From Selaginella moellendorffii (Eukaryota; Plantae; Lycopodiophyta), in assembly GCF_000143415.4 (NCBI RefSeq), contig NW_003314326.1, forward strand, positions 620,001-684,000: a stretch of DNA of 64,000 nucleotides, given 5' to 3'. Numbering within the stretch: position 1 is the stretch's first letter; each line of letters begins with the position of its first letter. Positions 7,125-13,676 of this stretch are shown piece after piece. The position numbers and the translations under genes were made by a program. The notes below the pieces were generated by a model that was given only the letters and a program-made list of their open reading frames with translations, made no database searches and had not been told where the DNA came from.

Positions 7125-8240
7125 AGAATTTTCAAGATAATTATTTAATCTAATTAATTTGTATTAAGGTTGGGACTACTTCTTCTTCCGCAATTGATCC
7201 ATTACCAGCACTGGCTGATATTGCCAAGGTAAAAATACATTTTCTAGTTATTGAATGTTTTATTAATTTCCAAGAGACGGGAATGTGGGATGTGGTTCCA
7301 TGTTGATGCAGCTTATGCTGGTAATGCCTGCATTTGTCCAGAATTTCGACATTTTTTAAATGGTGTTGAAAATGCCCACTCTTTTAATCTAAGTGCAAAT
7401 AAGTGGCTTCTTACCAATATTGACTGTTCCATACTTTGGCTGAAGGTTTGATCTTTTACAAACGTTACAATCAATTTTTAATATACTCTTACAGGACTCT
7501 AAGCAGCTATCTTCGACACTTTCAACATTAACAAACATACAGGTATGAGTTCTTAAATCTACTCTTTTTCATAGTTCAATTCAGTCTCGGGTGGTAAATT
7601 TCAAAGATGGCAAGTTGCTCAAGGAAGACGATTTAGGTAAGTGCGAATAATTCTTTTTCCTTTGACATGGGATACTCTTTTCCAATCTTTAAAGCTGTGG
7701 TTTGTGATGCGCTTGTATGGAGCCTCGGGACTTCGTAGCCACATAAGAACTCACATAAACCATGCTAAGCATTTCGAGATCCTTGTGCCAGAGGACTCTC
7801 GCTTTGAGGTATAACTCGTGAGAGTTCTCTAAAATTGTGAGACCATGATCTACGTTTGTGAGTTGCCAGTCTTAGCACCATGTCGATTTGGTCTCGTTTG
7901 CTTCAGGCTCAAACCAAGTGTAAAACAGTAAGGGCCAACAGCGTCGAGCGCCGTCAGGTGGTCGAAGATTGGAATAGACACTCGGAGAGATCTCTGTGAA
8001 GATAACGGATGGAAACTGAACTGTTTGCTTCTGGAAACTGTTAACTCTGGGGGAAAGATTTTCATGACACACACTGTAAGAAGCTCTCAAGCTATAGTGA
8101 AATGGGACTATAACCGATTTATCCTCAGGTACTCTCGGGCGTGTATACATTGAATGTCAATTGGTGGCACGCAGACTAAACGTGAAAATGTTGATGGTGC
8201 GTGGAAGATAATCCGCACAAAACTTGTTAGATCAAGATTA
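7125..8240 (+). pseudogene. 5'-truncated duplicate of the AADC-like gene
   Basis: Near-identical to about 12585-13680 but lacks the 5' exons. Broken acceptors (gacgg for gacag; ttccaa for ttcag), a frameshift in KDWQ (aaagatgg), and a 69-bp insertion at 7928-7996. Confidence 0.9.
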
Positions 8241-8335
8241 ATAAGACCAGGTTATAATATCAAGATAATATCCTTGTGCATTTAAGAATAATAATTAACT
8301 AAGAAAACCTAGCTTTTAAAATGGTGAAAATCCAC

Positions 8336-9187
8336 GTGTGAGAAAGGGGCGAGTCTCGGAAGAGTTCTAGATGTGGTGACTAGGTATGTTTTTCTCTTTT
8401 CCTTTGTATCCGTTCCAGGTACTAGGGTCGCCAGGCAGCAGCATTGCCCGAGCAAGAGGGCTGTAGAAAGATCGGGGATCAAGCAGCCAAAGAAAAACTA
8501 TAACCAGGCTATATTTCTCAAGATTGTCTCCCAGGATCGCCAGGAGCTTTTCAGGAAGCAATGCGGAGAGCCCATCATCAAGAAATCCATTGAGAAGAGG
8601 GAATTTTTGCTAGGAAACCATTTGAACTGGAGAACACACATAACTGTGGTTTTTGCTGGCGCGGTTTTGCTTGCAACACCTGCGTTTGCGGCCGATGCTC
8701 TCAAGACATGTTCCTGTCTTCTCAAAGAATGCTGGTAATTTTATTCTTCTCTTTTGTCCTTCAAGAAAGATGAGTTTTTTTTTTCTTCCCTAGATTGGAG
8801 CCTGCTTGATGTATTGCAGATCCTTCGTGTGGTGCCAATGTTGCGTGCTTGCAAACTTGTAATGATTGACCTAACAAGACTGAGTGCCAAGTAAGTCTCT
8901 AGATTTTGTGTAAAACTTCTTTTGGATTGATCGACCATTGTGATTCACAAATACTTTCAGATAAAATGCAGAAACATTTTCGAAAACAAGGTGGTGGATA
9001 ATTGAGTGGTGAAAATGCAGAGACATTTTCAAGAACAAGGTGGTGGACGAATTCAACGATTGTGCAGTGAGCTGCAAGAGCTGCATCCCGCAGAAGAAAG
9101 ACGAGTGGCATTTCCGAGTCCCGCCACCCTCGGCACTTGTCCAGAGCTTCAACACCACGAAGTTTACTGGGAAATGGTTCATCTCCA
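8336..9187 (+). pseudogene. Truncated duplicate of violaxanthin de-epoxidase
   Basis: [14 protein letters not shown] and later exons resemble 13800-14647, with frameshifts and an internal duplication. Ends abruptly after GKWFIS at the duplication junction. Confidence 0.9.
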
Positions 9188-9326: not shown

Positions 9327-11379
9327 TCAAGCATAAACAGTGGCAATGGGAACGAACATAATGACCGTTTCCACAAACCAGTGACAAACATAAGTCTTGC
9401 CCATCTTGTGGCACAGCACATTTGGAGTGAGCTCCATCCCACTGCTGGTCTTCACATTTACTTTGGAAGCGCTGGTGCTACTCACCTTGTGACAGAAGTA
9501 GACTTTGTATGGAAACATAGTTGTGTGGCAGACGACCATAAGAGTGTCGCCTTTCGTGATGGGCTTGACCTCGCCAAGCTTGATAGTTTTTCCAACCTCG
9601 GCCGCGAAAGCCTTGCTTCCTGTCACCATGGTAATCTCTACAGGGCCAAGGGTGGAGGTGACGAACTCGGCCATTTCTTCCATGGAAGCCACACACTTCA
9701 TCTTCCCCCCAGCATTGTCATTGCAGAGTTCCAGAGTGAAAGCCATTTTTCTTGCCAGTGGAGACTCCTTTGGGACGTTAAACTCTTTCAAGTAAGAGTC
9801 AAGGCTCCGCTTACCGAAGTTTGTGTGCTTAGCCATTGCACTTGGCAGGAGTGCCCGTGGAGGATAAGTGTCACGGATGTTTGGGAGGACACTTTCAGTT
9901 CCTGTCAAGATTTTCCACAAGTACGAGTAAATAAGTTTGCAAAAGGAATGTTTGGACTTACCGTTTCTCTGTCGGAGTTCTTCCAGTGTGAAGAAGTGAT
10001 GGAGCATTCCAGGGGAGCATTTCGCTATTAAGGCTTTGATGGTTGGCCAGTCCATAGAGTGCAGTGACTTCCTTCCTCCATAACCCTCTTCCTCGTACTC
10101 AGTAAAAATCTGGATCAAATACAGCGGCATGTTCTTCTTGCAACTAGTGCTTGGTTTGACAGAAGCATCGCCAAAGTGAGCATTTCCACCTAGTGAAGCA
10201 TCACCAAAGTGAGTGTTTCCACCTAAACCATGGTCTTTGAAGTCCCCAAAGTGAGCATTGCCACCTAAACCTTTGAAGTCTCTGAAATGAGCATTGTCAT
10301 GGTCCTTAAAGTCGCCAAAGTGAGCATTGCCACCCAAACTTTTGTCTTTGAAGTCACCAAAGTGGGCGTTACCACCCAAGCCATGGTCTTTAAAGTCGCC
10401 AAAGTGTGCATTTCCACCCAAACTTTGGTCTTTGAAGTCACCAAAGTGAGCATTACCACCCAAACCATGATCTTTGAAGTCGCCAAAGTGGGTATTACCA
10501 CCTAATGATCCATGGTCTTTAAAGTCTCTGAAATGTGCATTACCGCCACCCAAACCGTGGTCTTTGAAGTCGCCAAAGTGGGCGTTACCACCCAAGCCAT
10601 GGTCTTTCAAGTCGCCAAAGTGTGCATTTCCTCCTAAACCATGATCTTTGAAGTCACCAAAGTGAGCATTACCACCCAAACCATGATCTTTGAAGTCGCC
10701 AAAGTGGGCATTACCACCCAATGATCCATGGTCTTTGAAATCACCAAAGTGGGCATTGCCACCCAATCCATGGTCTAATTTAAAGTCGCCAAAGTGTGCA
10801 TTTCCACCCAATGATCCGTGGTCTTTGAAGTCACCAAAGTGCGCATTTCCACCCAATCCAGTGTCACCAAAGTGAGCATTTCCGCCAAGCCCGTGATCCT
10901 TATGAAAGTCACCAAAGTGAGCGTTTCCACCCAGAGCTCCATGATCTTTGAAGTCACCAAATTGTGCATTGCCGCCAAGATCTCTGGCTTCCAGCGAGCG
11001 TACACGGTCTTGGAAGTCACCAAAGTGAGCATTCCCTCCGAGCTTGCTTGCTGCAAGGGCGGTCTTCTCTGCAGCATCGCCAAAGTGGGCATTGCCTCCA
11101 TGCCTTCCATAAGGATGACAAAAAAATCCTGCACGGTGGCAAAGCTTTGCATCGGCCGTGAAAACGCCTCTTCTCATCTGCTCGCCGAAGCGAGCCGATT
11201 CGAATGCCCCCAGAGGCGAGGCTTCATTAGCGAAACTCGTGGAGATTATGTCACTGCATTCGGAAAGCTGCCAAACAGGAATCCAAGTTTTAATAAGGTT
11301 TGAACGACAGAAGTTGGAAAGAACTACTTACAAGGAGAGACGAGAAGAGAAGAGATAGGCCGAGCGCAAGTCGATCCAT
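9327..11379 (-). CDS. Secreted BURP-domain protein with 22 (L)GGNAHFGD repeats, copy 2; PG1beta-like, candidate fused burpitide precursor/cyclase
   Basis: Exon 1 11379-11332 (signal peptide), intron 11331-11268, exon 2 from 11267, and a 60-nt intron at 9961-9902. The BURP domain is almost identical to copy 1, with all four CH motifs. Confidence 0.92.
10167..11099 (-). repeat. Coding tandem repeat, 22 units (LGGNAHFGD plus spacer)
   Basis: 22 units counted; variants NAQFGD, NTHFGD and NAHFRD. Confidence 0.95.
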
Positions 11380-11616
11380 GGTCTTGCGATGGGGCTGGAA
11401 GCTAGAATTTATTGATCGTAGCCTCACTGTGCAAGAAAAGAGACATAGATTTTTCAAGCCTCCGTGGGGACAATTGCTTTAATGCTCTTTTGTCCGGGAT
11501 CGTGAATTATTGATCTTGGCTTTGTACATTTCTCGATTTGCAGATAAGGACCCGGCACCGACTATCGTGCTGGACGATCTCAACTAATCATGTCAGAACC
11601 CTAAACACCGACGTTG

Positions 11617-13676
11617 ATGGATCCACAAGAGTTTCGAGCTCAAGCGCACAAGATGGTCGATTTCATCGCGGACTACTATCGGGATGTGGAGAGCCTTCCT
11701 GTGCGCAGCCAAGTTACAGTGAGTATATGATAAAGATCCATTGCCACATTCCAGGTTTGTTTCTTGTAGCCGGGATACTTGCGGAGTTCTCTTCCATCCA
11801 ATGCACCCGAGGAGCCTCAAAGCTTTGACACTGTTCTGGACGGTTTGCCTCGAGATTATCCATCCTATGATCCAAGAGTAGAAACAGCATTGTCGATTCG
11901 ATTGTTTGGCACACAGATGTGAAGTCAATGATAGTCCCTGGCGTCACGCATTGGCAGAATCCAAACTTTTTTGGTTTCTTCCCATCCAACAGTAGCACGG
12001 CGGGGATGCTGGGTGAGTTTCTCAGCGGCGGATTCAACGTAGATGGAAGCGAGTGGGCGACTTCTCCTGCGGCAACCGAGCTGGAAATGCTCGTCCTAAA
12101 CTGGCTGGGGAAGCTTCTTAATCTTCCAGACGAGTTTCTCTTCAATCGAAGCGGTAAACTCTTCATATTAATCAGCAGTAGATTAACTTGAAGTTTAAAT
12201 AGGCAATGGTGGTGGAGTGATCCATGCTAGTGCTAGTGAGGCTGTTCTAGTAGCCTTGCTAGCCGCTCGAGGTCGAGCTATTTCAGAGAACAAAGCCAAA
12301 GGTCTGGAAGAACAAGAAATTCTCTCCAAACTTTTGGTCTATACATCGGATCAAACACATCCTTGTCTACACAAGGCATGCGTGGTAGATAAACTATACA
12401 TATTTGAATAGTATAATTTCTTATGAAATTGTTATTGCAGATTGTTGGGCTCCCCAAAAGCAACCTTGTGATTCTGCCGACACTTGCGACAGATGATTGT
12501 GCTCTTTCACTTTCTATATTAAAATCAGCTGTTCAAGACAGTCTTGCGAAAGGCTTCATACCATTTTTCCTTGGAGCAACAGTGCGTAAGAATTTTCAAG
12601 ATAATTATTTAATCTAACTAATTTGTATTAAGGTTGGGACTACTTCTTCTTCCGCAATTGATCCATTACCAGCACTGGCTGATATTGCCAAGGTAAAAAT
12701 ATATTTTCTAGTTATTGAATGTCTTATTAATTTCCAAGAGACAGGAATATGGGATGTGGTTCCATGTTGATGCAGCTTATGCTGGTAATGCCTGCATTTG
12801 TCCAGAATTTCGACATTTTTTAAATGGTGTTGAAAATGCCCACTCTTTTAATTTAAGTGCAAATAAATGGCTTCTTACCAATATTGACTGTTCCATACTT
12901 TGGCTGAAGGTTTGATCTTTTACAAACGGTACGATCAATTTTTAATATACTCTTACAGGACTCGAAGCAGCTATCTTCAACACTTTCAACATTAACAAAC
13001 AAACAGGTATGAGTTTTTAAATCTACTCTTTTTCATTCATACAATTTCATTTCAGCTAAAAACTAGTTCAATTCAGTCTCGGGTGGTAAATTTCAAAGAT
13101 TGGCAAGTTGCTCAAGGAAGACGATTTAGGCAAGTGCGAATAATTCTTTTTCCTTTGACATGGGATACTCTTTTCAGATCTTTAAAGCTGTGGTTTGTGA
13201 TGCGCTTGTATGGAGCCTCGGGACTTCGTAGCCACATAAGAACTCACATAAACCATGCTAAGCATTTCGAGGTCCTTGTGCGAGAGGACTCTCGCTTTGA
13301 GGTATAACTCGTGAGAGTTCTCTAAAATTGTGAGACCATGATCTACGTTTGTGAGTTGCCAGATCTTAGCACCATGTCGATTTGGTCTCGTTTGCTTCAG
13401 GCTCAAACCAAGAGTAAAACATGAAGATAACGGATGGAAACTGAACTGTTTGCTTCTGGAAGCTGTTAACTCTGGGGGAAAGATTTTCATGACACACACT
13501 GTAAGAAGCTCTCAAGCTATAGTGAAATGGGACTATAACCGATTTATCCTCAGGTACTCTCGGGCGTGTATACATTGAGGATGTCAATTGGTGGCACGCA
13601 GACTAAACGTGAAAATGTTGATGGTGCGTGGAAGATAATCCAGGAGGAAGCACAAAACTTGTTAGATCAAGATTAA
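11617..13676 (+). CDS. PLP-dependent group II aromatic L-amino acid decarboxylase-like protein (TDC/TyDC/AAS family), divergent active site; multi-exon
   Basis: Motifs [57 protein letters not shown], the PLP-lysine motif SANKW and [16 protein letters not shown]; stop TAA at 13674-13676. The exons I traced join in frame; one uses a GC-AG intron (13130-13177). Confidence 0.88.

Follow-up and report, generated by a model that had tools for sequence, protein, structure and literature searches.

The gene TYDC3-1 of Selaginella moellendorffii raises the question of what a plant aromatic amino acid decarboxylase (AAAD) does once both its substrate pocket and its catalytic loop have been rebuilt. The gene lies at positions 11617-13676 on the forward strand of the window, by which we mean the whole 64,000-nucleotide stretch analysed here (contig NW_003314326.1, positions 620,001 to 684,000), on a scaffold of 1,132,267 bp. 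Its product is stored in RefSeq as "tyrosine decarboxylase 1 isoform X1" (XP_024514724.1, here P0273), TYDC3-1 being the UniProt locus name. The reading we favour, at a probability of roughly one half, is that TYDC3 is a functional, retuned enzyme of the AAAD fold, in which the fold and the core pyridoxal 5'-phosphate (PLP)-binding residues have been kept while the substrate pocket and large loop have been rebuilt; judged by its residues, it probably performs different chemistry from ordinary AAADs. A diverged functional protein is better supported than decay or an ordinary tyrosine or tryptophan decarboxylase (TyDC/TDC), because the gene is expressed and under purifying selection, and its product retains the core PLP ligands and is an outlier at the active site. 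These same four observations make plausible the neofunctionalised enzyme proposed in an earlier note on this DNA, while the activity suggested there is a guess.

In plant AAADs the conserved pocket consists, in CrTDC numbering, of Trp92, Phe100, Phe101, Pro102, Val122, Phe124, His318 and Leu325, the variable sites are Ala103, Thr369 and Gly370, and the catalytic residues are Lys319, the large-loop Tyr348 and the small-loop His203 (bioRxiv 10.1101/404970). The same study found the Tyr-to-Phe exchange to be necessary and sufficient for aldehyde-synthase chemistry, and its broad survey of NCBI and One Thousand Plants (1KP) homologues recovered only two mechanistic classes, Tyr-to-Phe and His-to-Asn. 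For comparison, 151 full-length plant homologues were aligned, with column counts given per 149 relatives, and 12 functional residues were chosen beforehand from the literature, their active-site roles being taken from relatives. TYDC3 departs at five of the 12 (V122D, F124S, H318N, L325I and the Tyr348 site), against a maximum of three among the 149 other homologues, and four of the eight residues of the conserved hydrophobic pocket are changed. Val122 is replaced by Asp (Val or Ile in 146 relatives, Asn in three), Phe124 by Ser (Phe in 146, Leu in three), His318 by Asn305 (His in 148 of 149) and Leu325 by Ile (Phe in 145, Leu in three), while the Tyr348 site, occupied by Phe in 94 relatives and Tyr in 50, holds no aromatic residue. 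Further changes, at positions where TYDC3 stands alone or almost alone, are, in its own numbering, Gln145 to His (Gln in all 149 relatives), Gly146 to Ala (Gly in 147), Ser to Glu104 (Ser in 142), Asn303 to Ser (Asn in 148), Asp348 to Asn (Asp in all 149), Pro355 to Ala (Pro in 146) and Leu356, at the Thr369 site, to Gln (Leu in 148). TYDC3 is thus an extreme outlier at the literature-defined pocket and catalytic positions, unique among the 151 plant homologues. At generally conserved columns its departures (11 at the 98% level) are no more numerous than those of TyDC-clade sequences, so that the oddity is concentrated in the active site.

The replacements named in the earlier note were borne out by alignment. 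DGSEW stands where the family has VGFSW or IGFSW, the Protein Data Bank (PDB) alignments placing VGFSW or VGFNW opposite it; SANKW is set opposite NAHKW in the same way; and VIHASASE in exon 4 replaces VIQGTASE (Q145H, G146A, T147S). L325I, Q356, P355A, D348N and N303S are changes beyond those it had listed. Its statement that the PLP Lys, HVDAAY and SDQTH are intact also agrees with the sequence, as the core of the cofactor site is kept (K306, D274, H190, T249 and S149); the Schiff-base Lys, the Asp to the pyridine N, the stacking His and the Thr to O3' are each present in 148-149 of the 149 homologues. The pocket Trp, both Phe and the Pro (W71, F79, F80 and P81) are retained as well.

The large loop comprises 25 residues between LWLK and VVNFKDW and includes no Phe, Tyr or Trp. 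The absence of an aromatic residue had been noticed previously and holds, with the splices confirmed in the contigs of four runs; the accompanying suggestion that NPEY had been deleted was wrong. The stretch from LW(L/V)K to VV(D/N)(Y/F)KDW measures 25 residues in TYDC3 and canonical relatives alike, and since loop length is unchanged the motif has been exchanged for other residues instead of lost. In the HMMER alignment Q336 faces Phe338 of AtPAAS and Tyr350 of PsTyDC, the motif being substituted with at most a compensated one-residue shift, and an ungapped MAFFT alignment instead puts Lys335 at the site of the catalytic Tyr. By the signatures of a canonical decarboxylase, the small-loop His (His190) is present and the large-loop Tyr is absent; none of the signatures of an aromatic aldehyde synthase (Tyr-to-Phe, small-loop His-to-Asn, aromatic pocket) is found in TYDC3.

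The gene model behind these residues consists of 12 exons encoding 488 aa, with introns of 48-74 nt that are all GT-AG, apart from the GC-AG intron 9, and a G+C content of 45% in exons and 32% in introns. XP_024514724.1 is identical to the 12 exon translations plus three split codons. Searches with the spliced model were run exon by exon, and the full-length steps used the stored protein P0273. An older model (P0163, SELMODRAFT_121532) mis-splices exons 8-10. The features of the gene, followed by a related fragment outside it, are as follows.

11617..11718, + strand: exon 1, residues 1-34, begins at the ATG; identical to P0273 1-34.
11770..11842, + strand: exon 2, residues 35-58 plus 1 base.
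11843..11916, + strand: intron 2, 74 nt, with the weak donor GTTTGC.
11917..12153, + strand: exon 3, residues 59-138, with W71, F79, F80, P81 and S82; PF00282 match.
12042-12056, + strand: pocket motif D101-G102-S103-E104-W105, within exon 3.
12203..12384, + strand: exon 4, residues 138-198.
12217-12240, + strand: VIHASASE (Q145H, G146A, T147S), within exon 4.
12346-12360, + strand: SDQTH, including the stacking His190, within exon 4.
12441-12581, + strand: exon 5; exons 5-6 encode residues 199-265, including T249 of GTTSS.
12633-12692, + strand: exon 6, with contig joints 12581/12633 and 12692/12745.
12745..12909, + strand: exon 7, residues 266-320, which also holds I312; PF00282 match.
12763-12780, + strand: HVDAAY with Asp274, within exon 7.
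12856-12870, + strand: S303-A304-N305-K306-W307, within exon 7.
12959..13006, + strand: exon 8, residues 321-336 (16 residues), first half of the catalytic large loop.
13004-13006, + strand: codon 336, CAG (Gln336) in the window.
13056..13129, + strand: exon 9, residues 337-361, second half of the loop and then VVNFKDWQ; GC donor at its end.
13110-13118, + strand: A355-Q356-G357, within exon 9.
13178-13301, + strand: exon 10, C-terminal domain (exons 10-12 span 13178..13676).
13363-13500, + strand: exon 11, C-terminal domain; joint 13301/13363.
13554-13676, + strand: exon 12, C-terminal domain, including the stop; joint 13500/13554.
7125..8241, + strand: decayed tandem copy of the 3' half of TYDC3 (intron 5 to stop), 94-96% identical by blastn; a pseudogene fragment outside the working gene.

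Two further RefSeq isoforms differ in the acceptors used. In isoform X2 a NAGNAG-type acceptor, where exon 4 meets exon 5, leads to the loss of a single Val, and isoform X3 of the other haplotype (P0275, XP_024515923.1) uses an alternative acceptor inside exon 9 (window 13056-13076), which deletes LKTSSIQ from the catalytic loop.

TYDC3 is transcribed. In approximately 20 public runs from eight studies, 28-52% of the words sampled from this stretch are present, matching the expectation for a spliced message. That the runs are RNA is only a guess of the search tool, and the evidence consists of assembled contigs, which keep the better-covered path, rather than reads; contigs of four runs (X1, X2, X7 and X10) from four studies were examined. 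Introns 3-11 are removed as modelled, intron 9 with its GC donor among them. All four runs show introns 3 and 4 spliced out and also contain the joint 13129/13178 (reported as 13127/13176 because of two ambiguous bases). Exons 7/8, 8/9 and 9/10 are joined as modelled in contigs from each of the four runs, so that the loop splice is genuine and the loop regains neither Tyr nor Phe; a restored Tyr or Phe is what the earlier note had named as refuting its proposal. A wrong splice concealing a loop Tyr or Phe was likewise rejected, retention of intron 8 leading to an immediate stop.

Another set of contigs, with about 90% identity across exons 5, 10 and 11, corresponds to a further group of stored proteins, XP_024515921-3 (TYDC3-2). 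The locus of the latter (L001, GL377637.1) has the same neighbours as in the window (a transketolase, two BURP genes, VDE and BRX) and can be aligned with the window along 8 kb at 95%, and therefore represents the other haplotype of a heterozygous assembly. This other set of contigs had also been considered as a paralogue, which was rejected given this synteny. Every variant letter that the contigs show corresponds to a difference between the haplotypes. Both alleles are transcribed, and contigs identical to the window occur alongside those belonging to the other haplotype.

The frames are intact on both haplotypes (488-490 codons), and comparison of the two alleles of this one species provides the measure of selection. 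Over all exons, 28 synonymous and 16 non-synonymous differences give a ratio of non-synonymous to synonymous substitution rates (dN/dS) of 0.16. Exons 1-4 and 6-9, which encode the pocket, PLP site and loop, differ by 13 synonymous changes and a single non-synonymous one (dN/dS 0.02, Fisher p = 5e-8), non-synonymous change in this core being depleted also against the yardstick of intron divergence (p = 0.002). Exons 5 and 10-12 have a dN/dS of 0.28, with seven of the 16 amino acid differences falling in exon 5. The TYDC3 core is under strong purifying selection, and the gene is not evolving neutrally; the alternative of an unexpressed, neutrally evolving gene, which the earlier note had allowed for, does not describe this locus. 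The sole core replacement is at residue 336, where the window has Gln; the other haplotype, like the contigs from each of the four runs, has Glu (GAG).

The relationship of TYDC3 to the AAADs is clear from both sequence and predicted structure. The full-length protein matches PF00282 over profile positions 1-375 of 375 with 375.3 bits (cut-off 27, E 3.5e-112), and exons 3, 4, 7 and 10 each exceed the Pfam cut-off for this pyridoxal-dependent decarboxylase domain. Exons 3 and 7 are closest to solved plant AAADs, first among them the Arabidopsis phenylacetaldehyde synthase 6EEI, and 6EEI, 6EEM and 6EEW are the top matches by sequence and structure. AlphaFold2, supplied with 60 homologues, predicted the fold with a mean local distance difference score (pLDDT) of 92.4 and a template modelling score (pTM) of 0.91, confidence being lower (58-68) solely at residues 331-350, the mobile loop; Foldseek returned 6EEI as the best match (TM 0.93-0.97). 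In a maximum-likelihood tree TYDC3 and two other S. moellendorffii AAADs form a Selaginella-only clade (support by the Shimodaira-Hasegawa-like approximate likelihood ratio test, SH-aLRT, of 97) within the land-plant basal AAADs. The TYDC3 stem measures 0.62 substitutions per site, compared to 0.24 for the canonical paralogue P0222, and on this phylogeny TYDC3 is an offshoot of the basal clade of plant AAADs that evolves fast and is confined to Selaginella.

A full-length search with P0273 found nothing between 96% identity (the other haplotype) and 64%, short fragments being outside the length range of the tool. DGSEW was absent from the best 150 matches of exon 3 against a library of 1.84 billion representatives, and a word search with exon 3 gave five fragments only, all canonical. 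Selaginella entries were retrieved by word search with trimmed exon pieces aligned on the Ginkgo protein P0001, followed by cluster look-up. This protein (Gb_28002, 445 aa), the best representative match to exon 3, contains the AAAD N-terminal half twice, the duplicated half probably being an artefact of assembly or annotation.

Several observations weigh against a retuned enzyme. Intron 2 is read through, in all four runs, by the contigs listed across it (X1 record 1, X2 record 15, X7 record 21 and X10 record 8), and the joint between exons 2 and 3 (11842/11917) is listed in the contigs of none of them. Intron 1 (11719-11769) is spliced in the X2 and X10 contigs and retained in those of X1 and X7. 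No other intron of the gene is as long or as rich in G+C as intron 2, and retention of intron 2 brings in an in-frame TGA at 11920-11922 and thus a premature stop. Because the contigs across intron 2 keep it in every run, and those across intron 1 do so in two, giving premature stops, the productive mRNA may be a minor form, with much of the message unproductive; retention is read as the majority form in the sampled runs, compatible with a spliced minor form, and may reflect regulated or inefficient splicing of introns 1 and 2. N303S and H305N alter two ligands of the PLP phosphate and the invariant Gln145 is changed too, and as these three substitutions touch the cofactor site, binding of PLP by TYDC3 is not guaranteed. 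Position 336, aligned to the catalytic Tyr, is polymorphic for Gln and Glu and so is not itself tightly constrained. The full-length search yielded no orthologue from another species (short fragments being out of range, this is not proof of absence), and constraint is consequently demonstrated solely for the short time since the haplotypes split. The sister paralogue P0222 already carries Phe at the loop site, which blurs the distinction drawn for TYDC3; given this Phe, loss of the Tyr hydroxyl may predate TYDC3, and its ancestor may already have been of the aldehyde-synthase type. A search of the literature for locus tags, accessions and Selaginella AAADs found no paper that names the TYDC3 locus. 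The idea of a polar substrate, finally, is a guess from residue identities only.

Among the rival explanations, which we rank as pseudoenzyme, then early decay, then ordinary enzyme, the first is unlikely but survives best. TYDC3 would here be a catalytically dead protein kept for a non-catalytic role, for example as a heterodimer partner of canonical AAADs or as a ligand-binding protein. The loss of the loop Tyr/Phe along with the whole PE(Y/F)L(K/R)NK motif, and the contact of N303S, H305N and Q145H with the cofactor site, would both be expected of such a protein, and purifying selection is equally compatible with a non-catalytic role. The active sites of canonical AAADs are built from both chains, and the residues contributed by the partner chain (the motif at positions 101 and 103, and the loop) are those most altered. 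However, Lys306, Asp274, His190, Thr249 and the SAS phosphate loop are all retained, the polar-for-hydrophobic substitutions fall within one pocket rather than being scattered, which looks like retuning, and nothing in the evidence points to heterodimers.

It is improbable that TYDC3 is instead turning into a pseudogene, with constraint relaxed after duplication and now residual. Retention of introns 1 and 2 in the contigs across them, the state of the neighbouring tandem copy of the 3' half, already decayed, the higher dN/dS of exons 5 and 10-12 and the Gln/Glu polymorphism in the loop could be taken as its early signs, but the frames are intact on both haplotypes, the core exons hold one non-synonymous against 13 synonymous changes, introns 3-11 are correctly spliced and the fold is predicted at high confidence. 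An ordinary aromatic amino acid decarboxylase or aromatic aldehyde synthase, as the name "tyrosine decarboxylase 1" implies, is similarly improbable, for while full-length membership of the family and fold, the kept W71, F79, F80 and P81 of the aromatic pocket and the Phe of the sister paralogue, typical of aldehyde synthases, speak for it, the five changed functional residues, among them V122D, F124S and the lost catalytic Tyr/Phe, are a combination unique among the 151 sequences and the RefSeq name is an automatic transfer.

If TYDC3 is a retuned enzyme, the aldimine between PLP and Lys306 would still be formed and the amino acid decarboxylated, with no loop Tyr to protonate the C-alpha carbanion. 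The carbanion might then be captured by O2, yielding an aldehyde, NH3 and H2O2 as in the Tyr-to-Phe aldehyde synthases, or might alternatively be protonated slowly by another group or by water. The pocket most likely no longer suits an aromatic ring, to judge from its residues. Because Asp, Ser, Asn and Gln replace Val122, Phe124, His318 and the usual Leu369, the preferred substrate would probably not be Phe, Tyr or Trp; one with a polar or cationic side chain is more likely. Any named substrate and product are guesses, and His, put forward in the earlier note, has no specific support. More doubtful than either the retuned enzyme or the pseudoenzyme is the suggestion that TYDC3 represents a third, so far undescribed class on the plant AAAD fold, distinct in mechanism and specificity. 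Its acidic and polar pocket (Asp101, Ser103, Glu104, Asn305 and Gln356) would then bind an amino acid that is basic or strongly polar, for example Lys, Orn, Arg, His or a diamino acid, and the enzyme, having no loop Tyr, would turn this substrate into an amino-aldehyde or cyclic imine in a single step. Were this so, one enzyme would combine the roles of decarboxylase and amine oxidase, feeding Selaginella-specific amine or alkaloid chemistry.

The closest characterised counterpart is AtPAAS (PDB 6EEI), the best sequence match (E 3.9e-173, approximately 55% identity), which has the same length, domain order and PLP-Lys/Asp/His/Thr set; as in the aldehyde synthases generally, the proton-donating Tyr hydroxyl is also absent from TYDC3. 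AtPAAS, however, has a loop Phe, the rest of NPEFLKNK and a hydrophobic pocket (IVGFSW, NAHKW, PLGRRF), whereas TYDC3 has Gln/Glu at the loop site, no aromatic residues in the loop, and DGSEW, SANKW and AQGRRF. In exon 3 NVDGSEW contrasts with GIVGFSW in AtPAAS and NVVGFNW in tyrosine decarboxylases, and in exon 7 LSANKW contrasts with MNAHKW or LNAHKW in relatives. The closest non-allelic relative, P0222 ("tyrosine decarboxylase 1 isoform X2", 542 aa, 64% identity), belongs to the same Selaginella-only clade but has every canonical residue (IVGFSW, VIQGTASE, NAHKW, TTPEFLRNK, PLGRRFR) and a branch about one third as long. The acid system for C-alpha protonation is disabled in TYDC3 as it is in PsTyDC Y350F, DDC Y332F and HDC Y334F and in the His-to-Asn aldehyde synthases (EgPAAS and insect DHPAA synthase), where this leads to decarboxylation-dependent oxidative deamination (bioRxiv 10.1101/404970). 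Those enzymes carry single substitutions in a canonical aromatic pocket, whereas TYDC3 retains the small-loop His, has exchanged its entire loop motif and has a polar pocket.

The conifer AAADs of Taxus chinensis (P0173) and Cephalotaxus hainanensis (P0177) have the non-aromatic Val at the loop Tyr/Phe site (DTEVLRNK) and Leu for Phe124, but keep E-x-LRNK, NPHKW, VIQG and PLG, amounting to two to three departures compared with five of 12 (13 of 14 in a wider list) in TYDC3. Leu for Phe124 also occurs in Cryptomeria japonica (P0156), in an isoform that does not include that part of the loop. The conifer loop changes are a further natural departure outside the two described classes of aldehyde synthase.

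One or two residues suffice to switch the substrate (Gly/Ser370) or the chemistry (Tyr-to-Phe, His-to-Asn) of plant AAADs. TYDC3 is a natural member of the family, maintained by selection, in which the loop motif has been replaced entirely and the conserved hydrophobic pocket by half, and as such offers a clonable test of how far the AAAD fold can depart from aromatic substrates. Through it a new step in the metabolism of lycophytes, one forming an amine or an aldehyde, could also come to light, and the database name "tyrosine decarboxylase 1" is not to be trusted for this locus.

The decayed tandem copy of the 3' half has lost splice sites, among them the exon-7 acceptor, is frameshifted and bears a 28-nt deletion over the border of intron 8 and exon 9, deletions of 1, 2 and 8 nt and a 69-nt insertion in exon 11; the other haplotype carries the same decayed copy and arrangement. 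Codon 336 is CAG in both gene and decayed copy on the window haplotype (13004 and 7540) and GAG in both on the other (L001 11388 and 6040), and contigs carry G at this codon beside window-type letters at 12964 and 12979. The shared codons suggest gene conversion between TYDC3 and its pseudogene copy within each haplotype. Between the haplotypes (window 11617-13676 against L001 10001-12067) the synonymous divergence (dS) is 0.089, approximately four times the intron divergence (2.2%), and the differences are clustered in exons 5 and 11 (8-10%), with exons 1-2 and introns 1-2 near-identical. This mosaic divergence might stem from tracts of gene conversion or from constraint acting on introns as short as these.

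The stretch at 8414-9187, after the decayed copy, matches the 5' part of the downstream VDE gene, and both lie between two BURP genes in what is a tandem segmental duplication. One of the BURP-domain genes, at 9327-11177 on the reverse strand and with many LGGNAHFGD repeats, stands head to head with TYDC3, the two start codons being separated by 439 bp (11178-11616), and this pairing is found on both haplotypes.

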